25,162 nt of DNA, from the NCBI GenBank assembly GCA_002269645.1, contig NIVC01005137.1:1-25162 (forward strand). Direction: 5' to 3'. The translations under genes were made by a program, and so were the position numbers. Below the pieces are notes generated by a model. The model was not told the origin of the DNA. It ran no database searches and worked only from the letters and a program-made list of their open reading frames with translations. This document shows, piece by piece, positions 2,683-25,162 of this stretch (position 1 is the stretch's first letter; each line of letters begins with the position of its first letter). Origin of the DNA: Macrostomum lignano (Eukaryota).

Positions 2683-3252
2683 ATGAGGGCTCTTTGCGTC
2701 TGCCTGCTGGTGTCTCTGGCCCTGTCCGTAAACTAAATTAACTCCGCCGTGACGCCTCGCAGTGCGGCAGACAACAGGCAAGAGGTTCGGATCTGATCTA
2801 CAGCGTTGCAAATGGCGATTATTTGTTCGTCAGCAAGGACAAGAGGGGCAGCGCGCCGGACAATTTGGTCAAGAGAACATCGTTGAGAACATCGGCGAGT
2901 CGAGCAAATCGGTTCCTCCTGCAGCACGGCGGCAATAACCGCTACGGCATCTACAACCCGAGCTCCGATGGCTCACGTGGTCCTGCCTCACCCAAGAGAA
3001 GCCGGGGCTGAGCGCATCAAGCAGAGGAACGAGTTCGTATTTGAGAGCGTCGGGCACAATCGCTCTGTGATATTCAACCCCAGCTATGGTAAATATCTGT
3101 TTGCGTCAAAAAGCCTTCACAACGTAGACAATAACCTTGTGCTCAGTCATAAATCTTGGTTCGATTGCCGCAACAAGTTTCACTCTGATTCTGCACGACG
3201 AGCCTTGTTCCTAGTCTGTATAAATGGAGAGAACTTCATTAAGTGCACCTGA
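2683..3252 (+). pseudogene. Disabled gene for a secreted protein of about 190-200 aa with a three-fold internal repeat (beta-trefoil/ricin-B-like fold suspected)
   Basis: The signal peptide MRALCVCLLVSLALSVN is followed by an in-frame TAA (2734-2736). A 5-bp duplication GATCT-GATCT (2790-2799) shifts the frame; removing it gives QEVRIYSVANGDYLFVS. A second shift near 2967 joins the track ORFs 2823-3011 and 2968-3252. Internal repeats: IYSVANGDYLFVS vs IFNPSYGKYLFAS, and NRFLLQHGGNNRYGIYNPS vs NEFVFESVGHNRSVIFNPS. Confidence 0.7.
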
Positions 3253-3674
3253 GCTCTCGCACCTGATCAGAGACCGAACGATGCATCTGATAACTTTCAG
3301 ATTGGGAATTTTCAGATTGGGTTAAATCCAGGACTAATTAATGACTTAATGCTTAACCATTTTTTGATACCTACATGTAAGCAAGTTAAGATGACTACTT
3401 TGATGCAGTGTAATGTAGATTGATCTGATACGTTGTCTACGGTATAGAGCTTCTCGATGAATTTAGGCTCAATTAGTTCGCTTTTATACCGAGTTGTTGC
3501 AAACAGAACGAAGATTTGCATGGATTACACGTCTGTATTGGCTCCTGCTGCTTTTCCAGAATATACATGTAGGGAACAGCTTTTTGTCTATGGGGAGTCT
3601 GGAGAGCAGCAGAAATGCTTGAGTTCGATGTCTGATTCAAATAGAACCAAATGTTGGTCTTAACCTACCTGTTT

Positions 3675-4026
3675 CTGATTCAGGAAAAAAGAACACAGCT
3701 ACTATATACGTTATAATTAGGCAGTTTCCGTTTTTTATTCACAAAAATCAACAAAATCTTACCTTTAGAACTCTTGTGGATCGCAACTGGCTTTACTATG
3801 ACCAGGTGGCAATGCTGACAAATGTTTAATTTGTTTCCTGAAACTTCGTTTGGCTTGTACAAGCTGGCCCTTGGCGGGTTTGGCCCATAGATTTTTGGGC
3901 ACTGGAAGCAATATATAGATATGTCTATGCTTCCTAGGCCGAAACGCGGCACAAATACCTTATTGTAACATATGTAATTTGTCAATGCAACAACAGCATC
4001 AGCAACAACAATAACAACAACAACAT
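3675..4026 (-). other. Possible cryptic or degraded multi-exon gene for a secreted Cys-containing protein
   Basis: ATG at 4026 opens MLLLLLLLLMLLLH (a TTG repeat), then TGA. There is a GT-AG 57-nt intron (3958-3902, ending TTGCTTCCAG), a 139-nt exon (3901-3763) ending AAAG|GTAAGA, and an 88-nt intron (3762-3675) ending TTTTTTCCTGAATCAG. GC boxes lie upstream (about 4142 and 4178). No intact ORF without indel correction. Confidence 0.25.
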
Positions 4027-4031
4027 CACAA
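3988..4031. repeat. Imperfect (CAA)n microsatellite
   Basis: CAACAACAGCATCAGCAACAACAATAACAACAACAACATCACAA. Confidence 0.8.
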
Positions 4032-4485
4032 TATACTGTCAGGTCTTATAAAATACGCGTCTCTGGACTGGGTCGTCTAGATCTTTAGTCTTGTAGTCCT
4101 CCGTAAATACAGAAGACAACGACAGGCAACACGAGCCGTTTGGGCGGACAGATAAGAGGGCTCTGGGTGTGCAGGACGGGCGGGTGTGCAGAAGAAGAAT
4201 TGCATTCAATCAAAGATTAATTGAAATCTTGAACCTAGAATTTACATGCGCATCTACGAGATACATTAATTTCGTAGTTTTTGTTTACTACTACTTTCTA
4301 GTCAGTAGGCGGGGATCGCTTAAAACGGTAAAATGAATGCTGGTTAAATACCACAATACAATTAAACTGCTCAGTCAGCCAGCACGCGGAGGCGAAATAA
4401 TATAGACACTACTTAGTCATCGTATGATTATTCACGGTTATCAACCCATCCCATCCAAAAACCTGATTTGATCTGTCTATCTATC

Positions 4486-4656
4486 CTAGCTTCAGCAAAA
4501 AAATTATGCTATTTACGTTTCTTGCTTTGAGAACTATTGTTCTTTTTAGTAAATATACCATCGAATCCTTCTAGCTTCAGCGATAAAAATATTTTATGCA
4601 ATTTACGTTTCTTGCTGTGAGAACTATTGTTCTTTTTAGTAAATATACCATCGAAT
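4486..4656. repeat. About 85-bp tandem duplication
   Basis: CTAGCTTCAGC...ATTTACGTTTCTTGCT(T/G)TGAGAACTATTGTTCTTTTTAGTAAATATACCATCGAAT at 4486-4566 and 4571-4656. Confidence 0.9.
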
Positions 4657-4896
4657 TGTACAATTTTGCAGACTATTAGCAGAGCCTTTCAAACGGATGC
4701 TTGAAAAAAATAGTCGACGATATAGAATCAGAATCAACGATACACTATTTGTGGGATAATGTACAAATTAAATCCAGAATGAATTTCTTCGATAAAACTT
4801 GGTCTTTGCCTAAAACTAGCAAAAATAAAGTTGCAAGCCACTGAACGCGCAAAGGAGTTGCTAGAATTGTAGCAGTCGATTACGAAGCTATTAGTA

Positions 4897-4902
4897 TTTA
4901 TT
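4897..4902 (-). terminator. Candidate polyadenylation signal AATAAA for the 5006-5214 gene
   Basis: TTTATT on the + strand, about 100 nt downstream of the corrected stop codon. Confidence 0.4.
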
Positions 4903-5005
4903 TTGGTACCAAATTAATTGACAATTAAAACCATAAAACTGAAATGGATGATGCATCGTTCAGCCTCTGATCAGGTGAGAGCCGCCCGGGTCAGTCAGCG
5001 AGCGC

Positions 5006-5214
5006 TCAGGTGCAGCGGTACATGCGGGGATTGTAGCAGTGCGTGCCGCACTTGCGATGACGACCGGGCACAGGAAGTAGCCATTGATGCAAGTGTGCGT
5101 CCTCGGGCTGTAGCAGGTGCCGCCGCAGGACCGGTCGCCGCCACCGCAGGCGTCAGTAGAGTTCACAGACACGGCCAGCAGAACCAGCAGGCAGACGCAG
5201 AGAGCCTTCATCAT
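5006..5214 (-). CDS. Small secreted cationic 8-Cys peptide, CBM52 (PF10645 Carb_bind)-like, with a 1-bp frameshift at about 5061
   Basis: The signal peptide is MMKALCVCLLVLLAVSVNSTDA. Restoring one G (GTC GT CAT to GTC GGT CAT) gives the mature peptide CGGGDRSCGGTCYSPRTHTCINGYFLCPVGHRKCGTHCYNPRMYRCT-stop (TGA at 5008-5006), a two-fold repeat C-xx-G-x-R-x-CG-xx-CY-x-PR-xxx-C. Codons are C/G-ending, and TATA, CCAAT and polyA motifs are appropriately placed. The track's 84-aa version is the frameshifted read-through. Confidence 0.85.
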
Positions 5215-6227: not shown

Positions 6228-6471
6228 GAAGGGATCGGGGTGATGGGATGAAGGGGATCAGAGTCAGTGGATGAAGGAATCAGAGTCCGTGGATGAAGGA
6301 ATCAGGGTCCGTGGATGAAGGGATCGGGGTGATAGGATGAAGGGGATTAGAGTCAGTGGATGAAGGAATCAGGGTCCGTGGATGAAGGGATCAGGGTCCG
6401 TGGATGAAGGGATCAGGGTCCGTGGATGAAGGGATCAGGGTCCGTGGATGAAGGGATCAAGGTCAGCGGGT
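6228..6471. repeat. 22-bp minisatellite (GAAGGGATCAGGGTCCGTGGAT) x11
   Basis: Eleven units of 22-23 bp. Two variant units recur as a pair 89 bp apart (6228 and 6317). Confidence 0.92.
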
Positions 6472-7346: not shown

Positions 7347-10300
7347 ATGATGCTGTGTTGTTTGAGCTGTAGAGATGATGCTGTGAGCTGTAGAGATGAT
7401 GCTGTGTTGTTTGAGCAGTAGAGATGATGCTGTGTTGTTTGAGCTGTAGAGATGATGCTGTGAGCTGTAGAGATGATGCTGTGTTGTTTGAGCAGTAGAG
7501 ATGATGCTGTGTTGTTTGAGCAGTAGAGATGATGCTGTGTTGTTTGAGCAGTAGAGATGATGTTGTGAGCTGTAGAGATGATGCTGTGAGCTGTAGAGAT
7601 GATGCTGTGAGCTGTAAAGATGATGCTGTGTTGTTTGAGCTGTAGAGATGATGCTGTTTGAGCTGTAGAGATGATGCTGTGTTGTTTGAGCTGTAGAGAT
7701 GATGCTGTTTGAGCTGTAGAGATGATGTTGTGTGAGCTGTAGAGATGATGCTGTGAGCTGTAGAGATGATGCTGTGTTGTTTGAGCAGTAGAGATGATGC
7801 TGTGTTGTTTGAGCAGTAAAGATGATGCTGTTTGAGCTGTAGAGATGTTGCTGTTTGAGCTGTAGAGATGATGCTGTGTTGTTTGAGCAGTAGAGATGAT
7901 GCTGTGTTGTTTGAGCAGTAGAGATGATGCTGTTTGAGCTGTAGAGATGATGCTGTGAGCTGTAGAGATGACGCTGTGAGCTGTAAAGATGATGCTGTGT
8001 TGTTTGAGCAGTAGAGATGATGCTGTTTGAGCTGTAGAGATGATGTTGTGAGCTGTAGAGATGATGCTGTGCTGTTTGAGCAGTAGAGATGATGCTGTGT
8101 GAGCTGTAGAGATGATGCTGTGAGCTGTAGAGATGACGCTGTGAGCTGTAGAGATTATGCTGTGAGCTGTAGAGATGATGCTGTGAGCTGTAGAGATGAT
8201 GCTGTTTAAGCTGTAGAGATGACGCTGTGAGCTGTATAGATGATGCAGTGAGAGCAGTAGAGATGATGCTGTGTTGTTTGAGCTGTAGAGATGATGCTGT
8301 TTGAGCTGTAGAGATGATGTTGTGAGCTGTAGAGATGATGCTGTGTTGTTTGAGCAGTAGAGATGATGCTGTTTGAGCTGTAGAGATGATGCTGTGAGCT
8401 GTAGAGATGACGCTGTGAGCTGTAGAGATGACGCTGTGAGCTGTAGAGATGATGCTGTGAGCTGTAGAGATGATGCTGTTTAAGCTGTAGAGACGACGCT
8501 GTGAGCTGTAGAGATGACGCTGTGAGCTGTAGAGATGATGCTGTGAGCTGTAGAGATGATGCTGTTTAAGCTGTAGAGATGACGCTGTGAGCTGTAGAGA
8601 TGACGCTGTGAGCTGTAGAGATGATGCTGTGAGCTGTAGAGATGACGCTGTGAGCTGTATAGATGATGCAGTGAAAGCTGTAGAGATGATGCTGTGTTGT
8701 TTGAGCTGTAAAGATGATGCTGTTTGAGCTGTAGAGATGATGTTGTGAGCTGTAGAGATGATGCTGTGTTGTTTGAGCTGTAGAGATGATGCTGTGTGAG
8801 CTGTAGAGATGATGCTGTGAGCTGTAGAGATGACGCTGTGAGCTGTAGAGATGATGCTGTGAGCTGTAGAGATGACGCTGTGAGCTGTATAGATGATGCA
8901 GTGAGAGCAGTAGAGATGATGCTGTGTTGTTTGAGCTGTAGAGATGATGCTGTGAGAGCTGTAGAGATGATGCTGCGTGAGCTGTAGAGATGATGCTGTG
9001 AGCTGTAGAAATAATGCTGTGAGCTGTAGAGATGATGCTGTGTTGTTTGAGCTGTAGAGATGATGCTGTGAGCTGTATTGATGATGCTGTAAGAACTGTA
9101 GAGATGATGTTGTGAGCTGTAAAGATGATGTTGTGTTGTGTGAGCTGTAGAGATGATGCTGTGAGCTGTAGAGATGATGCTGTGAGCTGTAGAGATGATG
9201 CCGTGAGCTGTATAGATGATGCAGTGAAAGCTGTAGAGATGATGCTGTGAGAGCTGTAGAGATGATGCTGTTTGAGCTGTAGAGATGACGCTGTGAGCTG
9301 TATAGATGATGCAGTGAGAGCTGCAGAGATAATGATGTGAGCTGTAGAGATGATGCTGTTTGAGCTGTAGAGATGATGCTGTGAGCTGTAGAGATGATGC
9401 TGTGAGCTGTAAAGATGATGCTGTGTTGTTTGAGCTGTAGAGATGATGCTGTTTGAGCTGTAGAGATGATGTTGTGAGCTGTAGAGATGATGCTGTGTTG
9501 TTTGAGCAGTAGAGATGATGCTGTTTGAGCTGTAGAGATGATGTTGTGAGCTGTAGAGATGATGCTGTGCTGTTTGAGCAGTAGAGATGATGCTGTGTGA
9601 GCTGTAGAGATGATGCTGTGAGCTGTAGAGATGACGCTGTGAGCTGTAGAGATGATGCTGTGAGCTGTAGAGATGATGCTGTGAGCTGTAGAGATGATGC
9701 TGTTTAAGCTGTAGAGATGACGCTGTGAGCTGTATAGATGATGCAGTGAGAGCAGTAGAGATGATGCTGTGTTGTTTGAGCTGTAGAGATGATGCTGTTT
9801 GAGCTGTAGAGATGATGTTGTGAGCTGTAGAGATGATGCTGTGTTGTTTGAGCAGTAGAGATGATGCTGTTTGAGCTGTAGAGATGATGCTGTGAGCTGT
9901 AGAGATGACGCTGTGAGCTGTAGAGATGACGCTGTGAGCTGTAGAGATGATGCTGTGAGCTGTAGAGATGATGCTGTTTAAGCTGTAGAGATGACGCTGT
10001 GAGCTGTAGAGATGACGCTGTGAGCTGTAGAGATGATGCTGTGAGCTGTAGAGATGATGCTGTTTAAGCTGTAGAGATGACGCTGTGAGCTGTAGAGATG
10101 ACGCTGTGAGCTGTAGAGATGATGCTGTGAGCAGTAGAGATGATGCTGTGTTGTTTGAGCAGTAAAGATGATGCTGTTTGAGCTGTAGAGATGATGCTGT
10201 TTGAGCTGTAGAGATGATGCTGTGTTGTTTGAGCAGTAGAGATGATGCTGTGTTGTTTGAGCAGTAGAGATGATGCTGTTTGAGCTGTAGAGATGATGCT

Positions 10301-13300
10301 GTGAGCTGTAGAGATGACGCTGTGAGCTGTAAAGATGATGCTGTGTTGTTTGAGCAGTAGAGATGATGCTGTTTGAGCTGTAGAGATGATGTTGTGAGCT
10401 GTAGAGATGATGCTGTGCTGTTTGAGCAGTAGAGATGATGCTGTGTGAGCTGTAGAGATGATGCTGTGAGCTGTAGAGATGACGCTGTGAGCTGTAGAGA
10501 TGATGCTGTGAGCTGTAGAGATGATGCTGTGAGCTGTAGAGATGATGCTGTTTAAGCTGTAGAGATGACGCTGTGAGCTGTATAGATGATGCAGTGAGAG
10601 CAGTAGAGATGATGCTGTGTTGTTTGAGCTGTAGAGATGATGCTGCGTGAGCTGTAGAGATGATGTTGTGAGCTGTAGAGATGATGCTGTGTTGTTTGAG
10701 CAGTAGAGATGATGCTGTTTGAGCTGTAGAGATGATGCTGTGAGCTGTAGAGATGACGCTGTGAGCTGTAGAGATGACGCTGTGAGCTGTAGAGATGATG
10801 CTGTGAGCTGTAGAGATGATGCTGTTTAAGCTGTAGAGACGACGCTGTGAGCTGTAGAGATGACGCTGTGAGCTGTAGAGATGATGCTGTGAGCTGTAGA
10901 GATGATGCTGTTTAAGCTGTAGAGATGACGCTGTGAGCTGTAGAGATGACGCTGTGAGCTGTAGAGATGATGCTGTGAGCTGTAGAGATGACGCTGTGAG
11001 CTGTATAGATGATGCAGTGAAAGCTGTAGAGATGATGCTGTGTTGTTTGAGCTGTAAAGATGATGCTGTTTGAGCTGTAGAGATGATGTTGTGAGCTGTA
11101 GAGATGATGCTGTGTTGTTTGAGCTGTAGAGATGATGCTGTGTGAGCTGTAGAGATGATGCTGTGAGCTGTAGAGATGACGCTGTGAGCTGTAGAGATGA
11201 TGCTGTGAGCTGTAGAGATGACGCTGTGAGCTGTATAGATGATGCAGTGAGAGCAGTAGAGATGATGCTGTGTTGTTTGAGCTGTAGAGATGATGCTGTG
11301 AGAGCTGTAGAGATGATGCTGCGTGAGCTGTAGAGATGATGCTGTGAGCTGTAGAAATAATGCTGTGAGCTGTAGAGATGATGCTGTGTTGTTTGAGCTG
11401 TAGAGATGATGCTGTGAGCTGTATTGATGATGCTGTAAGAACTGTAGAGATGATGTTGTGAGCTGTAAAGATGATGTTGTGTTGTGTGAGCTGTAGAGAT
11501 GATGCTGTGAGCTGTAGAGATGATGCTGTGAGCTGTAGAGATGATGCCGTGAGCTGTATAGATGATGCAGTGAAAGCTGTAGAGATGATGCTGTGAGAGC
11601 TGTAGAGATGATGCTGTTTGAGCTGTAGAGATGACGCTGTGAGCTGTATAGATGATGCAGTGAGAGCTGCAGAGATAATGATGTGAGCTGTAGAGATGAT
11701 GCTGTTTGAGCTGTAGAGATGATGCTGTGAGCTGTAGAGATGATGCTGTGAGCTGTAAAGATGATGCTGTGTTGTTTGAGCTGTAGAGATGATGCTGTTT
11801 GAGCTGTAGAGATGATGTTGTGAGCTGTAGAGATGATGCTGTGTTGTTTGAGCAGTAGAGATGATGCTGTTTGAGCTGTAGAGATGATGTTGTGAGCTGT
11901 AGAGATGATGCTGTGCTGTTTGAGCAGTAGAGATGATGCTGTGTGAGCTGTAGAGATGATGCTGTGAGCTGTAGAGATGACGCTGTGAGCTGTAGAAATG
12001 ATGCTGTGAGCTGTAGAGATGATGCTGTGAGCTGTAGAGATGATGCTGTTTAAGCTGTAGAGATGACGCTGTGAGCTGTATAGATGATGCAGTGAGAGCA
12101 GTAGAGATGATGCTGTGTTGTTGAGCTGTAGAGATGATGCTGTTTGAGCTGTAGAGATGATGTTGTGAGCTGTAGAGATGATGCTGTGTTGTTTGAGCAG
12201 TAGAGATGATGCTGTTTGAGCTGTAGAGATGATGCTGTGAGCTGTAGAGATGACGCTGTGAGCTGTAGAGATGACGCTGTGAGCTGTAGAGATGATGCTG
12301 TGAGCTGTAGAGATGATGCTGTTTAAGCTGTAGAGATGACGCTGTGAGCTGTAGAGATGACGCTGTGAGCTGTAGAGATGATGCTGTGAGCTGTAGAGAT
12401 GATGCTGTTTAAGCTGTAGAGATGACGCTGTGAGCTGTAGAGATGACGCTGTGAGCTGTAGAGATGATGCTGTGAGCTGTAGAGATGACGCTGTGAGCTG
12501 TATAGATGATGCAGTGAAAGCTGTAGAGATGATGCTGTGTTGTTTGAGCTGTAGAGATGATGCTGTGTTGTTTGAGCTGTAGAGATGATGCTGTTTGAGC
12601 TGTAGAGATGATGTTGTGAGCTGTAGAGATGATGCTGTGTTGTTTGAGCTGTAGAGATGATGCTGTGTGAGCTGTAGAGATGATGCTGTGAGCTGTAGAG
12701 ATGACGCTGTGAGCTGTAGAGATGATGCTGTGAGCTGTAGAGATGACGCTGTGAGCTGTATAGATGATGCAGTGAGAGCAGTAGAGATGATGCTGTGTTG
12801 TTTGAGCTGTAGAGATGATGCTGTGAGAGCTGTAGAGATGATGCTGCGTGAGCTGTAGAGATGATGCTGTGAGCTGTAGAAATAATGCTGTGAGCTGTAG
12901 AGATGATGCTGTGTTGTTTGAGCTGTAGAGATGATGCTGTGAGCTGTATTGATGATGCTGTAAGAACTGTAGAGATGATGTTGTGAGCTGTAAAGATGAT
13001 GTTGTGTTGTGTGAGCTGTAGAGATGATGCTGTGAGCTGTAGAGATGATGCTGTGAGCTGTAGAGATGATGCCGTGAGCTGTATAGATGATGCAGTGAAA
13101 GCTGTAGAGATGATGCTGTGAGAGCTGTAGAGATGATGCTGTTTGAGCTGTAGAGATGACGCTGTGAGCTGTATAGATGATGCAGTGAGAGCTGCAGAGA
13201 TAATGATGTGAGCTGTAGAGATGATGCTGTTTGAGCTGTAGAGATGATGCTGTGAGCTGTAGAGATGATGCTGTGAGCTGTAAAGATGATGCTGTGTTGT

Positions 13301-16300
13301 TTGAGCAGTAGAGATGATGCTGTTTGAGCTGTAGAGATGATGTTGTGAGCTGTAGAGATGATGCTGTGCTGTTTGAGCAGTAGAGATGATGCTGTGTGAG
13401 CTGTAGAGATGATGCTGTGAGCTGTAGAGATGACGCTGTGAGCTGTAGAGATGATGCTGTGAGCTGTAGAGATGATGCTGTGAGCTGTAGAGATGATGCT
13501 GTTTAAGCTGTAGAGATGACGCTGTGAGCTGTATAGATGATGCAGTGAGAGCAGTAGAGATGATGCTGTGTTGTTTGAGCTGTAGAGATGATGCTGTTTG
13601 AGCTGTAGAGATGATGTTGTGAGCTGTAGAGATGATGCTGTGTTGTTTGAGCAGTAGAGATGATGCTGTTTGAGCTGTAGAGATGATGCTGTGAGCTGTA
13701 GAGATGACGCTGTGAGCTGTAGAGATGACGCTGTGAGCTGTAGAGATGATGCTGTGAGCTGTAGAGATGATGCTGTTTAAGCTGTAGAGATGACGCTGTG
13801 AGCTGTAGAGATGACGCTGTGAGCTGTAGAGATGATGCTGTGAGCTGTAGAGATGATGCTGTTTAAGCTGTAGAGATGACGCTGTGAGCTGTAGAGATGA
13901 CGCTGTGAGCTGCAGAGATGATGCTGTGAGCTGTAGAGATGACGCTGTGAGCTGTATAGATGATGCAGTGAAAGCTGTAGAGATGATGCTGTGTTGTTTG
14001 AGCTGTAGAGATGATGCTGTTTGAGCTGTAGAGATGATGTTGTGAGCTGTAGAGATGATGCTGTGTTGTTTGAGCTGTAGAGATGATGCTGTGTGAGCTG
14101 TAGAGATGATGCTGTGAGCTGTAGAGATGACGCTGTGAGCTGTAGAGATGATGCTGTGAGCTGTAGAGATGACGCTGTGAGCTGTAGAGATGATGCTGTG
14201 AGCTGTAGAGATGACGCTGTGAGCTGTATAGATGATGCAGTGAAAGCTGTAGAGATGATGCTGTGTTGTTTGAGCAGTAGAGATGATGCTGTTTGAGCTG
14301 TAGAGATGATGCTGTGAGCTGTAGAGATGACGCTGTGAGCTGTAGAGATGACGCTGTGAGCTGTAGAGATGATGCTGTGAGCTGTAGAGATGATGCTGTT
14401 TAAGCTGTAGAGATGACGCTGTGAGCTGTAGAGATGACGCTGTGAGCTGTAGAGATGATGCTGTGAGCTGTAGAGATGATGCTGTTTAAGCTGTAGAGAT
14501 GACGCTGTGAGCTGTAGAGATGACGCTGTGAGCTGTAGAGATGATGCTGTGAGCAGTAGAGATGATGCTGTGTTGTTTGAGCAGTAAGATGATGCTGTTT
14601 GAGCTGTAGAGATGATGCTGTTTGAGCTGTAGAGATGATGCTGTGTTGTTTGAGCAGTAGAGATGATGCTGTGTTGTTTGAGCAGTAGAGATGATGCTGT
14701 TTGAGCTGTAGAGATGATGCTGTGAGCTGTAGAGATGACGCTGTGAGCTGTAAGATGATGCTGTGTTGTTTGAGCAGTAGAGATGATGCTGTTTGAGCTG
14801 TAGAGATGATGTTGTGAGCTGTAGAGATGATGCTGTGCTGTTTGAGCAGTAGAGATGATGCTGTGTGAGCTGTAGAGATGATGCTGTGAGCTGTAGAGAT
14901 GACGCTGTGAGCTGTAGAGATGATGCTGTGAGCTGTAGAGATGATGCTGTGAGCTGTAGAGATGATGCTGTTTAAGCTGTAGAGATGACGCTGTGAGCTG
15001 TATAGATGATGCAGTGAGAGCAGTAGAGATGATGCTGTGTTGTTTGAGCTGTAGAGATGATGCTGTTTGAGCTGTAGAGATGATGTTGTGAGCTGTAGAG
15101 ATGATGCTGTGTTGTTTGAGCAGTAGAGATGATGCTGTTTGAGCTGTAGAGATGATGCTGTGAGCTGTAGAGATGACGCTGTGAGCTGTAGAGATGACGC
15201 TGTGAGCTGTAGAGATGATGCTGTGAGCTGTAGAGATGATGCTGTTTAAGCTGTAGAGACGACGCTGTGAGCTGTAGAGATGACGCTGTGAGCTGTAGAG
15301 ATGATGCTGTGAGCTGTAGAGATGATGCTGTTTAAGCTGTAGAGATGACGCTGTGAGCTGTAGAGATGACGCTGTGAGCTGTAGAGATGATGCTGTGAGC
15401 TGTAGAGATGACGCTGTGAGCTGTATAGATGATGCAGTGAAAGCTGTAGAGATGATGCTGTGTTGTTTGAGCTGTAAAGATGATGCTGTTTGAGCTGTAG
15501 AGATGATGTTGTGAGCTGTAGAGATGATGCTGTGTTGTTTGAGCTGTAGAGATGATGCTGTGTGAGCTGTAGAGATGATGCTGTGAGCTGTAGAGATGAC
15601 GCTGTGAGCTGTAGAGATGATGCTGTGAGCTGTAGAGATGACGCTGTGAGCTGTATAGATGATGCAGTGAGAGCAGTAGAGATGATGCTGTGTTGTTTGA
15701 GCTGTAGAGATGATGCTGTGAGAGCTGTAGAGATGATGCTGCGTGAGCTGTAGAGATGATGCTGTGAGCTGTAGAATAATGCTGTGAGCTGTAGAGATGA
15801 TGCTGTGTTGTTTGAGCTGTAGAGATGATGCTGTGAGCTGTATTGATGATGCTGTAAGAACTGTAGAGATGATGTTGTGAGCTGTAAAGATGATGTTGTG
15901 TTGTGTGAGCTGTAGAGATGATGCTGTGAGCTGTAGAGATGATGCTGTGAGCTGTAGAGATGATGCCGTGAGCTGTATAGATGATGCAGTGAAAGCTGTA
16001 GAGATGATGCTGTGAGAGCTGTAGAGATGATGCTGTTTGAGCTGTAGAGATGACGCTGTGAGCTGTATAGATGATGCAGTGAGAGCTGCAGAGATAATGA
16101 TGTGAGCTGTAGAGATGATGCTGTTTGAGCTGTAGAGATGATGCTGTGAGCTGTAGAGATGATGCTGTGAGCTGTAAAGATGATGCTGTGTTGTTTGAGC
16201 TGTAGAGATGATGCTGTTTGAGCTGTAGAGATGATGTTGTGAGCTGTAGAGATGATGCTGTGTTGTTTGAGCAGTAGAGATGATGCTGTTTGAGCTGTAG

Positions 16301-19300
16301 AGATGATGTTGTGAGCTGTAGAGATGATGCTGTGCTGTTTGAGCAGTAGAGATGATGCTGTGTGAGCTGTAGAGATGATGCTGTGAGCTGTAGAGATGAC
16401 GCTGTGAGCTGTAGAGATGATGCTGTGAGCTGTAGAGATGATGCTGTGAGCTGTAGAGATGATGCTGTTTAAGCTGTAGAGATGACGCTGTGAGCTGTAT
16501 AGATGATGCAGTGAGAGCAGTAGAGATGATGCTGTGTTGTTTGAGCTGTAGAGATGATGCTGTTTGAGCTGTAGAGATGATGTTGTGAGCTGTAGAGATG
16601 ATGCTGTGTTGTTTGAGCAGTAGAGATGATGCTGTTTGAGCTGTAGAGATGATGCTGTGAGCTGTAGAGATGACGCTGTGAGCTGTAGAGATGACGCTGT
16701 GAGCTGTAGAGATGATGCTGTGAGCTGTAGAGATGATGCTGTTTAAGCTGTAGAGATGACGCTGTGAGCTGTAGAGATGACGCTGTGAGCTGTAGAGATG
16801 ATGCTGTGAGCTGTAGAGATGATGCTGTTTAAGCTGTAGAGATGACGCTGTGAGCTGTAGAGATGACGCTGTGAGCTGTAGAGATGATGCTGTGAGCAGT
16901 AGAGATGATGCTGTGTTGTTTGAGCAGTAAAGATGATGCTGTTTGAGCTGTAGAGATGATGCTGTTTGAGCTGTAGAGATGATGCTGTGTTGTTTGAGCA
17001 GTAGAGATGATGCTGTGTTGTTTGAGCAGTAGAGATGATGCTGTTTGAGCTGTAGAGATGATGCTGTGAGCTGTAGAGATGACGCTGTGAGCTGTAAGAT
17101 GATGCTGTGTTGTTTGAGCAGTAGAGATGATGCTGTTTGAGCTGTAGAGATGATGTTGTGAGCTGTAGAGATGATGCTGTGCTGTTTGAGCAGTAGAGAT
17201 GATGCTGTGTGAGCTGTAGAGATGATGCTGTGAGCTGTAGAGATGACGCTGTGAGCTGTAGAGATGATGCTGTGAGCTGTAGAGATGATGCTGTGAGCTG
17301 TAGAGATGATGCTGTTTAAGCTGTAGAGATGACGCTGTGAGCTGTATAGATGATGCAGTGAGAGCAGTAGAGATGATGCTGTGTTGTTTGAGCTGTAGAG
17401 ATGATGCTGTTTGAGCTGTAGAGATGATGTTGTGAGCTGTAGAGATGATGCTGTGTTGTTTGAGCAGTAGAGATGATGCTGTTTGAGCTGTAGAGATGAT
17501 GCTGTGAGCTGTAGAGATGACGCTGTGAGCTGTAGAGATGACGCTGTGAGCTGTAGAGATGATGCTGTGAGCTGTAGAGATGATGCTGTTTAAGCTGTAG
17601 AGACGACGCTGTGAGCTGTAGAGATGACGCTGTGAGCTGTAGAGATGATGCTGTGAGCTGTAGAGATGATGCTGTGAGCTGTAGAGATGACGCTGTGAGC
17701 TGTAGAGATGACGCTGTGAGCTGTAGAGATGATGCTGTGAGCTGTAGAGATGACGCTGTGAGCTGTATAGATGATGCAGTGAAAGCTGTAGAGATGATGC
17801 TGTGTTGTTTGAGCTGTAAGATGATGCTGTTTGAGCTGTAGAGATGATGTTGTGAGCTGTAGAGATGATGCTGTGTTGTTTGAGCTGTAGAGATGATGCT
17901 GTGTGAGCTGTAGAGATGATGCTGTGAGCTGTAGAGATGACGCTGTGAGCTGTAGAGATGATGCTGTGAGCTGTAGAGATGACGCTGTGAGCTGTATAGA
18001 TGATGCAGTGAGAGCAGTAGAGATGATGCTGTGTTGTTTGAGCTGTAGAGATGATGCTGTGAGAGCTGTAGAGATGATGCTGCGTGAGCTGTAGAGATGA
18101 TGCTGTGAGCTGTAGAAATAATGCTGTGAGCTGTAGAGATGATGCTGTGTTGTTTGAGCTGTAGAGATGATGCTGTGAGCTGTATTGATGATGCTGTAAG
18201 AACTGTAGAGATGATGTTGTGAGCTGTAAGATGATGTTGTGTTGTGTGAGCTGTAGAGATGATGCTGTGAGCTGTAGAGATGATGCTGTGAGCTGTAGAG
18301 ATGATGCGTGAGCTGTATAGATGATGCAGTGAAAGCTGTAGAGATGATGCTGTGAGAGCTGTAGAGATGATGCTGTTTGAGCTGTAGAGATGACGCTGTG
18401 AGCTGTATAGATGATGCAGTGAGAGCTGCAGAGATAATGATGTGAGCTGTAGAGATGATGCTGTTTGAGCTGTAGAGATGATGCTGTGAGCTGTAGAGAT
18501 GATGCTGTGAGCTGTAAAGATGATGCTGTGTTGTTTGAGCTGTAGAGATGATGCTGTTTGAGCTGTAGAGATGATGTTGTGAGCTGTAGAGATGATGCTG
18601 TGTTGTTTGAGCAGTAGAGATGATGCTGTTTGAGCTGTAGAGATGATGTTGTGAGCTGTAGAGATGATGCTGTGCTGTTTGAGCAGTAGAGATGATGCTG
18701 TGTGAGCTGTAGAGATGATGCTGTGAGCTGTAGAGATGACGCTGTGAGCTGTAGAAATGATGCTGTGAGCTGTAGAGATGATGCTGTGAGCTGTAGAGAT
18801 GATGCTGTTTAAGCTGTAGAGATGACGCTGTGAGCTGTATAGATGATGCAGTGAGAGCAGTAGAGATGATGCTGTGTTGTTTGAGCTGTAGAGATGATGC
18901 TGTTTGAGCTGTAGAGATGATGTTGTGAGCTGTAGAGATGATGCTGTGTTGTTTGAGCAGTAGAGATGATGCTGTTTGAGCTGTAGAGATGATGCTGTGA
19001 GCTGTAGAGATGACGCTGTGAGCTGTAGAGATGACGCTGTGAGCTGTAGAGATGATGCTGTGAGCTGTAGAGATGATGCTGTTTAAGCTGTAGAGATGAC
19101 GCTGTGAGCTGTAGAGATGACGCTGTGAGCTGTAGAGATGATGCTGTGAGCTGTAGAGATGATGCTGTTTAAGCTGTAGAGATAACGCTGTGAGCTGTAG
19201 AGATGACGCTGTGAGCTGTAGAGATGATGCTGTGAGCTGTAGAGATGACGCTGTGAGCTGTATAGATGATGCAGTGAAAGCTGTAGAGATGATGCTGTGT

Positions 19301-22300
19301 TGTTTGAGCTGTAGAGATGATGCTGTGTTGTTTGAGCTGTAGAGATGATGCTGTTTGAGCTGTAGAGATGATGTTGTGAGCTGTAGAGATGATGCTGTGT
19401 TGTTTGAGCTGTAGAGATGATGCTGTGTGAGCTGTAGAGATGATGCTGTGAGCTGTAGAGATGACGCTGTGAGCTGTAGAGATGATGCTGTGAGCTGTAG
19501 AGATGACGCTGTGAGCTGTATAGATGATGCAGTGAGAGCAGTAGAGATGATGCTGTGTTGTTTGAGCTGTAGAGATGATGCTGTGAGAGCTGTAGAGATG
19601 ATGCTGCGTGAGCTGTAGAGATGATGCTGTGAGCTGTAGAAATAATGCTGTGAGCTGTAGAGATGATGCTGTGTTGTTTGAGCTGTAGAGATGATGCTGT
19701 GAGCTGTATTGATGATGCTGTAAGAACTGTAGAGATGATGTTGTGAGCTGTAAAGATGATGTTGTGTTGTGTGAGCTGTAGAGATGATGCTGTGAGCTGT
19801 AGAGATGATGCTGTGAGCTGTAGAGATGATGCGTGAGCTGTATAGATGATGCAGTGAAAGCTGTAGAGATGATGCTGTGAGAGCTGTAGAGATGATGCTG
19901 TTTGAGCTGTAGAGATGACGCTGTGAGCTGTATAGATGATGCAGTGAGAGCTGCAGAGATAATGATGTGAGCTGTAGAGATGATGCTGTTTGAGCTGTAG
20001 AGATGATGCTGTGAGCTGTAGAGATGATGCTGTGAGCTGTAAAGATGATGCTGTGTTGTTTGAGCAGTAGAGATGATGCTGTTTGAGCTGTAGAGATGAT
20101 GTTGTGAGCTGTAGAGATGATGCTGTGCTGTTTGAGCAGTAGAGATGATGCTGTGTGAGCTGTAGAGATGATGCTGTGAGCTGTAGAGATGACGCTGTGA
20201 GCTGTAGAGATGATGCTGTGAGCTGTAGAGATGATGCTGTGAGCTGTAGAGATGATGCTGTTTAAGCTGTAGAGATGACGCTGTGAGCTGTATAGATGAT
20301 GCAGTGAGAGCAGTAGAGATGATGCTGTGTTGTTTGAGCTGTAGAGATGATGCTGTTTGAGCTGTAGAGATGATGTTGTGAGCTGTAGAGATGATGCTGT
20401 GTTGTTTGAGCAGTAGAGATGATGCTGTTTGAGCTGTAGAGATGATGCTGTGAGCTGTAGAGATGACGCTGTGAGCTGTAGAGATGACGCTGTGAGCTGT
20501 AGAGATGATGCTGTGAGCTGTAGAGATGATGCTGTTTAAGCTGTAGAGATGACGCTGTGAGCTGTAGAGATGACGCTGTGAGCTGTAGAGATGATGCTGT
20601 GAGCTGTAGAGATGATGCTGTTTAAGCTGTAGAGATGACGCTGTGAGCTGTAGAGATGACGCTGTGAGCTGCAGAGATGATGCTGTGAGCTGTAGAGATG
20701 ACGCTGTGAGCTGTATAGATGATGCAGTGAAAGCTGTAGAGATGATGCTGTGTTGTTTGAGCTGTAGAGATGATGCTGTTTGAGCTGTAGAGATGATGTT
20801 GTGAGCTGTAGAGATGATGCTGTGTTGTTTGAGCTGTAGAGATGATGCTGTGTGAGCTGTAGAGATGATGCTGTGAGCTGTAGAGATGACGCTGTGAGCT
20901 GTAGAGATGATGCTGTGAGCTGTAGAGATGACGCTGTGAGCTGTAGAGATGATGCTGTGAGCTGTAGAGATGACGCTGTGAGCTGTATAGATGATGCAGT
21001 GAAAGCTGTAGAGATGATGCTGTGTTGTTTGAGCTGTAGAGATGATGCTGTTTGAGCTGTAGAGATGATGTTGTGAGCTGTAGAGATGATGCTGTGTTGT
21101 TTGAGCTGTAGAGATGATGCTGTGTGAGCTGTAGAGATGATGCTGTGAGCTGTAGAGATGACGCTGTGAGCTGTAGAGATGATGCTGTGAGCTGTAGAGA
21201 TGACGCTGTGAGCTGTATAGATGATGCAGTGAGAGCAGTAGAGATGATGCTGTGTTGTTTGAGCTGTAGAGATGATGCTGTGAGAGCTGTAGAGATGATG
21301 CTGCGTGAGCTGTAGAGATGATGCTGTGAGCTGTAGAAATAATGCTGTGAGCTGTAGAGATGATGCTGTGTTGTTTGAGCAGTAGAGATGATGCTGTGAG
21401 CTGTAGAGATGACGCTGTGAGCTGTAGAGATGATGCTGTGAGCTGTAGAGATGATGCTGTTTAAGCTGTAGAGATGACGCTGTGAGCTGTAGAGATGACG
21501 CTGTGAGCTGTAGAGATGATGCTGTGAGCTGTAGAGATGACGCTGTGAGCTGTATAGATGATGCAGTGAAAGCTGTAGAGATGATGCTGTGTTGTTTGAG
21601 CTGTAAAGATGATGCTGTTTGAGCTGTAGAGATGATGTTGTGAGCTGTAGAGATGATGCTGTGTTGTTTGAGCTGTAGAGATGATGCTGTGTGAGCTGTA
21701 GAGATGATGCTGTGAGCTGTAGAGATGACGCTGTGAGCTGTAGAGATGATGCTGTGAGCTGTAGAGATGACGCTGTGAGCTGTATAGATGATGCAGTGAG
21801 AGCAGTAGAGATGATGCTGTGTTGTTTGAGCTGTAGAGATGATGCTGTGAGAGCTGTAGAGATGATGCTGCGTGAGCTGTAGAGATGATGCTGTGAGCTG
21901 TAGAAATAATGCTGTGAGCTGTAGAGATGATGCTGTGTTGTTTGAGCTGTAGAGATGATGCTGTGAGCTGTATTGATGATGCTGTAAGAACTGTAGAGAT
22001 GATGTTGTGAGCTGTAGAGATGATGTTGTGTTGTGTGAGCTGTAGAGATGATGCTGTGAGCTGTAGAGATGATGCTGTGAGCTGTAGAGATGATGCCGTG
22101 AGCTGTATAGATGATGCAGTGAAAGCTGTAGAGATGATGCTGTGAGAGCTGTAGAGATGATGCTGTTTGAGCTGTAGAGATGACGCTGTGAGCTGTATAG
22201 ATGATGCAGTGAGAGCTGTAGAGATAATGATGTGAGCTGTAGAGATGATGCTGTGAGCTGTAGAGATGATGCTGTGAGCTGTAGAGATGATGCTGTGTTG

Positions 22301-22449
22301 TTTGAGCAGTAGAGATGAGGCTGTGAGAGCTGTAGAGATGATGCTGTGAGCTGTAGAGATGATGCTGTGAGAGCTGTAGAGATGATGCTGCGTGAGCTGT
22401 AGAGATGATTCTGTGAGCTGTAGAGATGATGCTGTTAGAGCTGTAGAGA
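7347..22449. repeat. 15.1-kb satellite array; core monomer GAGCTGTAGAGATGATGCTGT (21 bp) with 23- and 28-bp variants and nested higher-order repeats
   Basis: A continuous head-to-tail array with variants ending GT, TT or GTTGTTT and an ATGACG variant. The diagnostic GTATTGATG recurs at 9075, 11421, 12946, 15840, 18182, 19706 and 21970. Confidence 0.99.
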
Positions 22450-23079
22450 CTTCTCCAATCGCACACATTTCGGAGATAGAGTGAGATGCAGATTGGAGTT
22501 GGTCTGAAGTAAATTTCGCACCTACAAATGCTAGGCAGCCGCTGACAAGGCTCGATGCCAGCCTCTGCATGGCAAACCCAATTCTGCATGGGTTTAAGCA
22601 CCGCTTAAAGAATGCAAGAAGTCGTGGCGGCGCGAGTTGCTTGCTGACACAGAAGGAACAAGAACGAGCAGTTTTTTATTAACTGAAGCGATAGACTCGG
22701 CCGCAGGGGACGAGGAAGGAAAAGTGCGTCATCGGTCGAACAAGAGTGAAATAAATTAAGGTCTGCGAATGTGGTGTAATTCTGCTTCAAAATAAGCACA
22801 GATCTGCAGTAGCAACAAGAAGAGATCGGACACAAAAAGCACAAAACAACGAATCTTCTGCTGCGTCACTCTGAAGATTGGAACAACAGTCGACAAAAGC
22901 GAAGCTCAGAGGAATTCCAGCTTCAGCCGCTCCTGACTCAGCTGGTCTATCAGGTGATAAGCGGCGATTTTGGGCGATTTTAAAGTTTGCAGTCTTTGGG
23001 TAACATCAAGTTTACGACAGCTGGTACTGATTTAGTGAGTGACGAATGTCTGTTGCCATAGCAATTAGCCCAGAGGCTG

Positions 23080-24846
23080 TCAGACCCCGGCATCCTGGAC
23101 GACGCGGGCTCCGTCGCGATGCTCGCCGCCAAGCCGCTGGTCCCCGTCCTCCTCCGCGTCTCTGGCCTTCCCGCCAGCTCCGCGCCGCGCGCGACAAAAG
23201 CCGAACAGCCGGCGCTGCAGTCGGACGTGCAGGTTGGGATTGGCCAGGATGTAGATGAAGAAGTTCATGGCCGAGTCCAGGATAGTCATGATGTTCGCCA
23301 GCTTCATCAGGCAGGCGCTGGCCGGACCGCTGGGATCCAGGATGACGAAGGCGGCGTCCAGCTTGGACAGGAAGGTGGGGAACTCGAACAGGAAGAACAC
23401 AATGGACAGCGCCACCACCGTGCGGTTGGCCGGCGAGATGGAGAAGCGGCGACGGCGCTGGCGGCGAAGGCCAGACGCGATGCTCTCGGAGTCGCTGACA
23501 CGAGGCTGCGCCGGAGGCGGGCGCGGCGGCGGCGGCGGCGGAGACCTGCAGCTGGCGCTGGCGCCTCCTGTCGCGCGGATGACGGCCCAGGAGATGACGG
23601 CGGAGGAGGCGGAGACGATGGATGATGGGGCCGCCGGACTGCAGCAGGAACAGCAGCACGGTCAGGTAGGCCACCGAGTAGGCGGGGCTGAGCAGCAGCG
23701 GCGAGGGCAGCTGGTCGCGAACTGGCCCGAGTCCAGGCAGAACACGTAGACGAACTCGAAGGCCCGCCGCGCAGGCCCCAGGAAGAAGGCGAGGCCGGTG
23801 GCCAGGGGAAACACCGGGCAGTTGAGCCGGCGGCTCCAGGTGTGGTACAGGCGGTGCGCGATGCCACGGCGGCCAGGCGCAGCAGGGCGATGAACACCAC
23901 CGTCCAGTTGCGGAGGCACTGCGACCAGCGACCAGCGGCACGCTGAGGCTCATCAGCACGGCCAGGAAAGCGCGCCAAGCCGGATGAGGGCACCTGGCGC
24001 GGTGCGTGGTTAGTGACATGTACTTTACGTTGCGCATGCTCTAGGCATTAGAAAGTGTTCATATCGAACTTTTGCTCTTCAATCGCATCCGAAGCTACGC
24101 AACGATAGGCGGATTTTGCATGATAGGCTTCAACAGTTCATGTACCGATATATGTTGCACAGTGCAGTTTTGCAGCTCTATGGTAGATAATTCTAAAGTA
24201 AGGTGGCTTTATTGAATGGCCAATGCTCTACATGCAGTGCTAAGTCAGTACTCTCTGGTTCTCAGCCAATGTCCTGTATTGAGGAAAATCCACTCTCCTC
24301 AAGGCTGAGCTGCAATTTTCGCATTTTATTCATTTTCCTAAGGCCCGGCCTCCCATATCATGGATGAAAAACTGCTGATACGTGTCTGGAACCATGCGTT
24401 TGGAAGTGACTTTTCAATTTCCCAGAAGACAACCCAAGCTAAGCATAATAATTTAGTAATTCTTCACACCTGAAGCCGCTGCGTGAGCAGCAGCAGGTAG
24501 AGGAAGAAGTGCAGGAACAGCGCCAGGTTGAAGGCGATCTCCACGGCGGCCAGGCGGAGGCAGCAGCCGGAGTTTTCGGCGCAGTCCGCGTCCGCGGCCC
24601 CGTTGCCGACGGCGCCCCCGCCGACCCTGGCGCGCAGCTGTCGATGGCACAGGGCGAGGCCCCAGGCTTGACCAGCACGTTGACGACGGCCAGGCCGGGG
24701 GTGGAGAAGTTGTACAGCCGCTCCAGGTTGTGCAGAGGCTGGCGCTGGCTCAGGTTGGCGCAGGAGACGCCGCGGGACCACAGGTCCTCTGCGTCCGAGG
24801 AGTTGTCGACCAGCAGCAGCCACTGGCCCAGCGATAGGTCTGACAT
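23080..24846 (-). CDS. Two-exon class A (rhodopsin-like) GPCR, FMRFamide-receptor/srw-like orphan, about 430 aa, interrupted by about 6 frameshifts (sequencing error or young pseudogene)
   Basis: Exon 1 is 24846-24470 (GCCATG start) and exon 2 is 23993-23080. Seven TM segments can be stitched across frames: PGLAVVNVLV..LALC; CLRLAAVEIAFNLALFLHFFLYLLLL; AFLAVLMSLSVPLVAWSQCLRNWTVVFIALLRLAAV; FPLATGLAFFLG..RAFEF; AYSVAYLTVLLFLLQSGGPIIIV; NRTVVALSIVFFLFEFPTFL; LANIMTILDSAMNFFIYILANPNL. Strong GC3 bias and no stop in the stitched frames. Confidence 0.85.
23994..24469 (-). other. 476-nt spliceosomal intron of the GPCR
   Basis: Donor TTCAG|GTGTGA at 24469, branch point CACTAAC at 24015-24009, acceptor CCAG|G at 23995-23994. 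The intron is AT-richer than the exons. Confidence 0.75.
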
Positions 24847-25162
24847 GGCTTTGGAGTGCTTGGCGGTAGAGAATCCACTTTGTCTGCCTGCGATCTCAGC
24901 AGCAGCTCAGACTCGCAGCTCCCGTTTTTTTTCGCTACGGATGCCGCCCACCTGGCGCTGACAGCCGGGGATTGGCGGATCGGCCGCGGCCAACGGAAGC
25001 CGGACCTGCAGCTGCTTGCGCTCGATTGTTTTTCCCACCGGCAGAGGCAACAGCAATTTTGCTCAGTTTCATTTGATGCCGTTGAAAGTAGCGCGTGAAT
25101 CTGGGATGCAGATTCTGCGAAAGCAATTTCCCCCAGCTTCTTTGAAACAAATTTGCTGTTTT

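Follow-up and report, generated by a model that had tools for sequence, protein, structure and literature searches.

A probable chimeric fusion pseudogene beside its parent, a gene for a small secreted CBM52-like peptide, in the flatworm Macrostomum lignano

The locus and the ends common to its two genes

The DNA under study is contig NIVC01005137.1 of assembly Mlig_3_7 of the flatworm Macrostomum lignano, and the whole of its 25,162 nucleotides is referred to here as the window. Two genes, A on the plus strand and B on the minus strand, are convergent and face each other 1.7 kb apart. The locus is also present as two collinear sister copies on contigs NIVC01001342.1 and NIVC01004792.1 (L001/L002), with 98.6-99.6% identity across the A/B region; M. 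lignano is a recent hidden polyploid, the assembly of which is highly duplicated (PMC10468722). Elsewhere in the window, GC-rich ORFs at 23-25 kb gave no match in Pfam.

The ends of A and B are alike and form the arms of an inverted repeat. On the 5' side, 2683-2745 pairs with 5149-5211 (63 nt, 78%), at the stop codons 3244-3260 pairs with 4998-5014 (17 nt, 94%), and on the 3' side 3256-3287 pairs with 4950-4981 (32 nt, 91%). The first-pass annotation of this DNA had reported 42/51 ungapped identities for the signal block, 16/17 for the TGCACCTGAGC.CTCGC endings and 26/28 for the UTR block, and an independent recount returned the same values for all three. Local alignment placed the signal block at 2683-2734 versus 5211-5160 (52 nt) and lengthened the 3' block to 3256-3303 versus 4981-4936, such that the similarity around and past the stop codon amounts to ~60 nt. 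Within the window, the signal and UTR blocks occurred only at these two sites, with 0 expected by chance according to shuffled sequences.

Two further resemblances had been proposed. An echo between CINGENFIKC of A and CINGYFLC of B did not hold up, as the underlying 9/11-nt match was equalled in 26% of shuffles, i.e., at chance level. Continued similarity to B at 2750-2772 of A can still be drawn, but it is explained at least as well by homology to the linker of a trefoil gene described below, which A matches here without gaps and in phase (AVTPRSAADNRQ vs AVTPGSAAASGQ).

The sequences between the shared ends had been taken to be unrelated, and our results bear this out: B matches the Carb_bind family of Pfam, and A carries a three-fold-repeat beta-trefoil. 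The possibility that the two cores are diverged paralogues was rejected on the basis of their different folds and different nearest relatives.

Gene B

The coding sequence of B (BOX15_Mlig018268g1; 5006-5214, minus strand) specifies a secreted, CBM52-like peptide of 69 aa with 8 Cys, as determined with Pfam and by comparison with P0001, the NCBI-annotated 69-aa B protein of a sister copy, which is 97% identical to B of the window and carries a precomputed PF10645 match. The proximal 3'UTR (4936-5005, minus strand), delimited by local alignment, includes the block in common with A. Inspection of the sequence revealed an AATAAA at 4897-4902 on the minus strand, beyond the part of the 3'UTR shared with A, and this is the likely poly(A) signal of B.

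In the window, B lacks one nucleotide between positions 5061 and 5062; this 1-nt deletion shifts the frame and produces a different C-terminus, and the ORF annotated there accordingly extends over 4960-5214 (84 aa). This deletion is not found on either sister contig, where B is intact, and only one difference in 371 nt separates B of the window from that of L001/L002. Thus, the earlier description of B as a gene for an 8-Cys peptide is correct for the two sister contigs, but the ORF of the window itself is broken, and the annotation of this contig carries a frameshifted product. The effect of the deletion was also evident in the profile scores. The frame-corrected peptide scored 32.2 bits against PF10645 (E=1.3e-7, profile positions 1-45 of 49), which is above the Pfam gathering cut-off of 25 bits and covers most of the domain, as expected of a family member; the 84-aa ORF scored 23.9 bits over profile positions 1-26 of 49, below the cut-off. 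The UniRef cluster that covers B is named 'Endo-1,3(4)-beta-glucanase'. A sequence search for solved structures related to B found none, and a literature search with the gene id of B found nothing specific.

Altogether, B is a genuine gene of M. lignano with transcript support, and it encodes a small secreted peptide of the Carb_bind/CBM52-like type. Its sequence suggests that this product may bind glycans (of the beta-glucan type) and serve in defence or in the matrix. That an animal secretes a fungal-type CBM52-like module as a peptide on its own is perhaps of modest interest in itself.

Gene A and its beta-trefoil relatives

Gene A begins with a block from B that comprises the start codon and signal-peptide codons (MRALCVCLLVSLALSVN; 2683-2734, plus strand), and tblastn with B as the query aligned this block at 82% identity over 17 aa. 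It ends with a second block from B, TGC ACC TGA followed by ~50 nt of 3'UTR (3244-3303, plus strand), which was delimited by repeat search and local alignment and has a deletion of ~21 nt relative to B. Between these lies a captured beta-trefoil core, consisting of a linker that begins AVTP and three repeats with broken frames (2745-3199, plus strand; HMMER, DNA alignment and tblastn), followed by a short tail of uncertain origin that reads ...LVCINGENFIK in frame 0 (3200-3243, plus strand). In sequence comparisons, the similarity of this tail to the B coding sequence and to the 3' flank of the trefoil gene on contig L003 did not rise above chance.

An exhaustive HMMER search with the A core yielded 18 matches, the best of which was P0003 (E=1.3e-27, 52% identity). 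The closest intact relative lies on an environmental contig, L003, and the core of A is 69% identical to this gene at the nucleotide level and about 52% identical at the amino acid level. In the L003 gene, the trefoil is preceded by a signal peptide particular to that gene (MLLSQVACTIALSAALLAFSG) and by a 50-aa linker, and a stop codon follows it immediately. The alignment of the trefoil family showed a three-fold repeat motif, and an AF2 model of P0003 based on an alignment of 16 sequences had a pLDDT of 90.4. With this model as the query, the top Foldseek matches were Symfoil, Mitsuba, ThreeFoil, 30K lipoproteins and ricin-type lectins (E about 1e-8). The alignment shows three repeats, and the model and its Foldseek matches agree with a beta-trefoil, a fold defined by three tandem repeats of ~40-45 aa with 12 strands in all. 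Six of the 7 family members matched RicinB_lectin_2 weakly (best E 5.9e-5), and the scores listed for relatives against this profile (PF14200) were 24.6, 17.7 and 17.1 bits, all under the 25.6-bit cut-off; A itself gave no match to RicinB_lectin_2, and no QxW motif was found in the family alignment. Hence neither the A core nor its relatives qualify as RicinB_lectin_2/R-type lectins. The proposal that both payloads have folds of a class in which carbohydrate binding is common nevertheless stands, given that B scores above the PF10645 threshold and that the relatives of the A core are trefoils with weak RicinB_lectin_2 matches.

In several relatives of the A core, the trefoil is joined to aerolysin-type, PI-PLC-X or EEP domains. 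This beta-trefoil family, which may likewise be of modest interest, has no Pfam model and recurs in front of aerolysin-type pore-forming domains; a literature search for a link between flatworm trefoils and aerolysins found nothing specific.

The conceptual A protein matched nothing in Pfam or among PDB sequences, its AF2 single-sequence model was unusable (pLDDT 35), and a word-seeded homologue search returned no match, the relatives having surfaced only in the exhaustive HMMER search. The DNA of A holds a series of lesions. The first, evident from the frame-0 translation, is an in-frame TAA directly 3' of the signal peptide (2734-2736, plus strand), which is present in the window, L001 and L002. 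The second, located by DNA alignment, is a 5-nt insertion relative to L003 (2782-2786, plus strand, approximate placement), which changes frame 0 (signal and INSAVTPRSAADNRQ) to frame 2 (DLIYSVANG...) and leaves the trefoil out of frame with the signal and linker. The third is a -1/+1 indel pair (2874-2905, plus strand; DNA alignment with L003), between the members of which the frame is not the ancestral one; it destroys a repeat-1 motif, VE(A/T)H...RN, that is conserved as judged from the trefoil family alignment. The fourth is a 35-nt deletion at 2968-2969 (plus strand), identified by family alignment, DNA alignment and tblastn, through which repeat 2 loses its conserved strand (L)WLFVSNDxx and frame 2 gives way to frame 0. 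As a result, one part of the trefoil is read in frame 2, which runs up to a TGA with its last base at 3011, and another in frame 0 (2887-3252). The tblastn alignment was broken into an HSP at 2793-2966 and a second one, in a different frame, at 2974-3180, a split found in all three copies. With the WLFVSND strand of repeat 2 deleted, and with its frameshifts and stop codon, A of the window does not encode a complete trefoil.

The stop codon, 5-nt insertion, -1/+1 pair and 35-nt deletion are common to the window, L001 and L002, and the L002 copy has a 12-nt and a 1-nt deletion in addition. An extra T in a run of T (3178-3180, plus strand) is found only in the window and L001, and it brings the B-like Cys-Thr-stop tail into frame with the preceding ORF. 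The L002 copy retains the L003-like AGG-TTCAC, and its trefoil frame stops at a TAG (3212-3214). The first-pass annotation had regarded Cys-Thr-stop as a C-terminus shared by A and B; it is not an ancestral one, as in L002, which has the outgroup state, the trefoil frame ends before the tail is reached. Likewise, A cannot be read as an open gene in any of the three copies, with its stop after the signal, frameshifts and lost beta-strand. The NCBI annotations of L001 and L002 contain no protein model over A, and no intact A-type protein was found in a collection of 5.8 billion proteins. The pairwise dN/dS of A and the L003 gene was ~0.58, as expected if one lineage had drifted, although a value from a single pair is weak and only suggestive. 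In sum, A is homologous both to B and to the L003 gene, which is intact, its disabling lesions are shared among its copies, and it has no annotated product, all of which marks it as a probable pseudogene.

Origin of gene A and comparison with known systems

A has two parents, and its lesions are present in three genomic copies. These observations are best explained if A is a chimeric fusion pseudogene, the relic of one duplication and fusion that occurred beside its parent B, and we regard this explanation as likely. The start codon, signal sequence, last two codons and proximal 3'UTR of A would have come from a local, inverted, partial copy of B, and its middle from a fragment of an unrelated ricin-B-like trefoil gene that included the linker and three repeats and extended past the position of that gene's own stop. 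The fusion of signal to linker is in frame, such that the product of A may at one time have been a secreted trefoil protein, and the in-frame junction and the close match of the signal block to B are compatible with a past functional period or with a very recent death of the gene. The order of these events is probable rather than directly visible, and the fusion may have proceeded via repair of the non-homologous or microhomology-mediated kind; both parents contain TGACGCC close to the 5' junction of A, and A showed no poly(A) tract, target-site duplication or transposon signature. The reading frame appears to have been lost before the three genomic copies diverged, and because of this the shared ends of A and B are leftover homology from the fusion event and not a selected secretion/UTR cassette.

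The first-pass annotation had suggested that an unrelated fold was captured inside a conserved expression/secretion cassette. The capture is borne out, in that a beta-trefoil lies between ends derived from B, but A offers no working cassette. We considered it unlikely that A is the relic of a real domain capture in which the signal and UTR of B were reused to secrete a trefoil lectin, with intact versions or further cores surviving elsewhere in M. lignano or Macrostomum. If true, such genes would make up a small modular family, specific to this lineage, of secreted effectors that bind glycans.

A broader version of this idea, an undescribed functional family in which a conserved intronless signal/3'UTR cassette is reused to secrete unrelated carbohydrate-binding domains, appears quite improbable. 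It is true that the ends are common to A and B and the cores are unrelated folds, that the signal-to-linker junction of A is in frame, and that B is a genuine gene for a peptide of the secreted type. However, all three copies of A are disabled by a stop codon, by two frameshifts that nothing compensates and by the loss of a beta-strand; the Cys-Thr-stop ending that A has in common with B comes into frame in just two of the copies, owing to a derived 1-nt insertion; and the closest intact trefoil gene has a signal and stop of its own. Searches for other members were also negative. Words from the signal and peptide of B recovered 2 candidates among the 5.8 billion proteins, both of which were copies of B, and no intact A-type protein was recovered there; neither the 24-nt signal block nor the 28-nt UTR block had an exact match among JGI metagenome contigs (0 each), a weak test in that these are not a flatworm genome. 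Thus, neither the protein collection, nor the metagenome contigs, nor the three M. lignano contigs contained another locus that pairs these ends with a different core, an absence that the first-pass annotation had itself named as a refutation of its proposal. With only A and B found, and A disabled in three copies, there is no sign of a superfamily with a conserved signal and hypervariable core. Because the gene with the large payload is multiply broken, A is better regarded as an ordinary relic of duplication and fusion than as part of a new modular effector family.

It is similarly improbable that A is still expressed in reduced form, either as a secreted product of ~98 aa with ~1.5 trefoil repeats, after splicing of a 35-nt intron (2728-2762), or as a non-coding or antisense-type transcript convergent with B. 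The candidate intron has GT(A/G)AAC...CGCAG boundaries in all three copies, and its removal restores the frame across the TAA and the 5-nt insertion; however, such restoration has a 1-in-3 chance, the removed sequence is homologous to coding linker in L003, and, because of the 35-nt deletion, the spliced product would still terminate at the TGA in frame 2 (last base 3011) and could not form a trefoil. Furthermore, there is no gene model over A in the L001 or L002 annotation to suggest expression, and the M. lignano genome papers provide no evidence for 35-nt introns; these papers (including PMC10468722) give only means, with a mean intron length of about 1.1-1.4 kb. The single intron of ~880 nt in a neighbouring gene of L002 is uninformative on typical sizes, and a tblastn search for intron sizes in M. 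lignano with an approximate human RPLP0 query returned no match. A second short intron near 2965, which would take frame 2 to frame 0, was rejected, as the GT...AG pairs of the right phase found by hand span 19-25 nt and would delete conserved sequence; the frame break at this position is explained by the 35-nt deletion instead.

Finally, misassembly or long-read indel error as the source of the A/B resemblance or of the lesions is extremely unlikely, for although Mlig_3_7 is PacBio-based and highly duplicated, and the deletion in B of the window (a G lost from a GG pair) resembles a typical consensus error, a substitution-type stop, a 5-nt insertion and a 35-nt deletion are not typical homopolymer errors, and misassembly was rejected because three separately assembled contigs agree on the architecture of A.

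As a probable chimeric fusion pseudogene, A would represent a clean, datable case in which partial duplication gave rise to a gene fusion, in the genome of a flatworm that became polyploid recently. At present the locus bears chiefly on annotation, given the frameshifted product annotated for B of this contig and the fact that A, being unannotated, could mislead screens for domain shuffling or effectors.

Several known systems invite comparison. Similar to conotoxins and amphibian skin peptides, A and B are more alike in signal and UTR than in their mature regions; however, those families comprise many intact paralogues with homologous, diversifying mature regions, whereas here there are two genes with non-homologous cores, one of the genes probably dead. 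The mature peptide of B matches PF10645/CBM52 almost end to end, with the 8-Cys pattern. The endo-1,3-beta-glucanase Eng1 of S. pombe carries three CBM52 modules (PMC9609564). Unlike the CBM52 modules of glucanases, B is a free-standing flatworm protein of 69 aa without a catalytic domain, and its glucan binding is putative. The relatives of the A core resemble R-type trefoil lectins, including those located N-terminal to aerolysin/ETX-MTX2 pore-forming modules, in their three-fold repeat, trefoil model and Foldseek matches to lectins. They differ in that their repeat motif is YNPSYxEYLFVSNDKxxGDxVVEAH...RNxF rather than QxW and in that they match RicinB_lectin_2 only below threshold, and the A copy is, in addition, one strand short and frameshifted. 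A also resembles chimeric fusion pseudogenes and dead-on-arrival gene fusions that arise by partial duplication and ectopic repair: A has two unrelated parents, one of them next door, and disabling lesions in all copies, with decay ongoing in one copy. What distinguishes A from these is the neat bracketing of its foreign core by ends of ~50-60 nt from the parent, which start exactly at the ATG.

Shared ends of genes A and B and the surrounding contig

To the plus-strand locus A (2683-3303) and the convergent minus-strand gene B (5006-5214), whose product is the NCBI protein BOX15_Mlig018268g1 of Macrostomum lignano, a repeat finder assigned the three inverted arms described in the first-pass annotation, with lengths of 63 nt (78%), 32 nt (91%) and 17 nt (94%). 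The identity counts given in the first-pass annotation were reproduced (42/51 in the signal block, 16/17 in the stop region and 26/28 in the UTR block), and local alignment extended the shared 3' block to 48 nt. Degenerate searches with the signal and UTR blocks matched these two places only, with 0 matches expected in shuffles. The ends are genuinely shared. The proposed echo between CINGENFIKC in A and CINGYFLC in B proved to be at chance level, as it is a match of only 9/11 nt that 26% of shuffles also reach.

By exact match, the 84-aa ORF of B in the window identifies the window as the complete 25,162-nt contig NIVC01005137.1 of assembly GCA_002269645.1 (Mlig_3_7). The gene pair is also present on two further Mlig_3_7 contigs, NIVC01001342.1 (L001) and NIVC01004792.1 (L002), which are collinear with the window and show 98.6-99.6% identity across the pair. 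Three near-identical copies of the locus are expected from the hidden and recent polyploidy of M. lignano and the high level of duplication in Mlig_3_7 (PMC10468722). The spacer between A and B contains a 90-nt direct repeat (two copies, 91%; 4486-4656) and a CAA-type microsatellite (3987-4028), and an indel of ~170 nt near 3565 distinguishes L001 from the window. Directly 5' of the ATG of A lies a 16-nt tandem repeat, AGGGAATGATGCTGAG (2574-2661), with about 5.5, 2.5 and 1.5 copies across the three contigs. It has a ATGATGCTG core in common with a 15-kb satellite array (7363-22449) that makes up 60% of the contig. In this array a 21-nt unit, TGAGCTGTAGAGATGATGCTG, recurs about 660 times, the higher-order period is 72 nt and the GC skew is strong, at about 0.57. 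Ahead of this satellite lies a smaller 22/89-nt array (6228-6464). The block at 23000-24900 is GC-rich (55-67% GC, the left part of the contig having 28-45%) and carries long overlapping ORFs on both strands, none with a Pfam match at E<=0.01; one minus-strand ORF includes a NFFIYILANPN stretch reminiscent of 7TM receptor helix 7.

Gene B as a CBM52-like peptide

The earlier reading of B as an eight-cysteine peptide ending in RCT-stop requires a change of frame, since its ATG ORF in the window encodes 84 aa with an unrelated C-terminus. This frameshifted ORF (4960-5214, minus strand) is the protein product listed in the public annotation of the contig. L001 and L002 encode an intact 69-aa peptide, MMKALCVCLLVLLAVSVNSTDACGGGDRSCGGTCYSPRTHTCINGYFLCPVGHRKCGTHCYNPRMYRCT (P0001), and relative to them the window lacks one base in 371 nt, between 5061 and 5062 (GTCGGTCAT to GTCGTCAT), which reflects an error in the long-read consensus or else a null allele of very recent origin. 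Misassembly is possible for this single-base deletion alone; as a source of A it was excluded, because the architecture of A agrees across the three contigs.

The frame-corrected B peptide matched Pfam PF10645 (Carb_bind) nearly end to end at 32.2 bits (cut-off 25), and the uncorrected 84-aa ORF matched in its first half only, at 23.9 bits. PF10645 represents the CBM52 modules of the fission-yeast Eng1 glucanase, and B is thus a small secreted CBM52-like peptide, which may bind glycans. The module stands free and secreted in a flatworm (5006-5214, minus strand; P0001); CBM52-like modules are otherwise known from fungal Eng1-type glucanases. Its presence in the flatworm may stem from horizontal transfer or from convergence on a Cys-rich pattern. 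Eng1 itself carries three CBM52 modules (PMC9609564).

A beta-trefoil fragment between B-type ends

No relatives of the A core were found by Pfam, PDB sequence search or word-seeded search. When 1.84 billion representatives were searched exhaustively with HMMER, 18 matches emerged, the best of which was P0003 (E=1.3e-27, 52% identity), encoded as a complete ORF on a 1-kb environmental contig, L003. The relatives have in common a three-fold motif, YNPSYxEYLFVSNDKxxGDxVVEAHxxxExRNxFxL, and a confident AF2 model of P0003 (pLDDT 90.4, from 16 sequences) falls among beta-trefoils by Foldseek. RicinB_lectin_2 was matched below threshold by six of seven family members and not by A itself. The initial description of a three-fold-repeat, carbohydrate-binding-like fold is fair for the family. 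In several relatives the trefoil domain precedes aerolysin/ETX-MTX2, PI-PLC-X or EEP domains; such proteins occur in bacteria (e.g. a hypothetical protein of Streptomyces), in metagenomes and among the transcripts of marine eukaryotes. No Pfam model scores above threshold on this family (P0003-P0020; L003; L004).

The L003 ORF opens with a signal peptide of its own (MLLSQVACTIALSAALLAFSG...), which a 50-aa linker joins to the trefoil; the stop codon comes immediately after RNRFTLVLP, and B-like sequence is absent from both ends of the ORF. The alignment of A with this ORF, in which 69% of nt are identical, extends from the linker (AVTP...) to slightly beyond the L003 stop position. On the plus strand, A is divided into a B-type 5' end (2683-2734, by similarity to B), a trefoil fragment (about 2745-3199, by alignment to L003), a stretch of about 44 nt that resembles the B coding sequence and the L003 3' flank at no more than chance level, and a B-type 3' end (3244-3303, by similarity to B). 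Since the L003 trefoil lacks B-like ends and A aligns from linker to stop, A is a chimera of B-type ends and a trefoil fragment. The proposal of a captured foreign fold was structurally right. The A linker (INSAVTPRSAADNRQ) shares its reading frame with the signal peptide, so the original fusion was in frame.

Lesions in A and alternative readings

A does not survive as an open reading frame, contrary to the earlier reading: its signal peptide, MRALCVCLLVSLALSVN, is followed immediately by a TAA (2734-2736), and the repeat domain is split between frame 2, closed by a TGA whose last base is 3011, and frame 0 (2887-3252). Judged relative to L003 and the trefoil family alignment, A has further plus-strand lesions. 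An insertion of 5 nt vs L003 near 2782 moves the reading from frame 0 into frame 2. A pair of indels, -1 and +1 (about 2874 and 2905), disrupts the conserved VEAH...RN motif in repeat 1. At 2968/2969, 35 nt have been deleted, which costs repeat 2 its WLFVSND strand and changes the frame a second time. Additional 1-nt insertions lie near the end of A. In each of the three contigs, tblastn with the L003 protein split the trefoil into two HSPs that differ in frame and have the same gap, and the L002 copy has further 12-nt and 1-nt deletions of its own. At 3178-3180, L002 has the L003-like state AGG-TTCAC, and its trefoil frame runs through ...RNRFTLILHDEPCS to a TAG that lies upstream of the CINGENFIKCT tail. 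Only the window and L001 have the additional T by which this tail comes into frame. The Cys-Thr-stop of A is therefore a remnant of B's last codons in the former 3' flank, and not a functional C-terminus in common with B.

The NCBI annotation of L001 and L002, which derives from a transcriptome-guided pipeline (PMC5730564), has no protein model across A, and no intact A-type protein was found in the protein collections searched. A single pairwise comparison of A with L003 gave a dN/dS of about 0.58, a value that fits constraint on one lineage and drift on the other but is weak evidence by itself.

Splicing of a candidate 35-nt GT...AG intron (2728-2762) would bypass the TAA and the first frameshift of A. 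This intron would consist of former coding linker, and the 35-nt deletion would still cut the spliced product to about 1.5 repeats, making this explanation unlikely. The one remaining novel reading, with intact fusions or other cores of this cassette elsewhere in Macrostomum, is improbable. A functional cassette family forming a new modular effector system, as first envisaged, is not supported, as a word-seeded protein search with the B signal and peptide returned two candidates only, both M. lignano copies of B, and both end blocks had 0 matches in metagenome contigs. A is instead most probably a chimeric pseudogene beside its parent gene B, a known kind of object.
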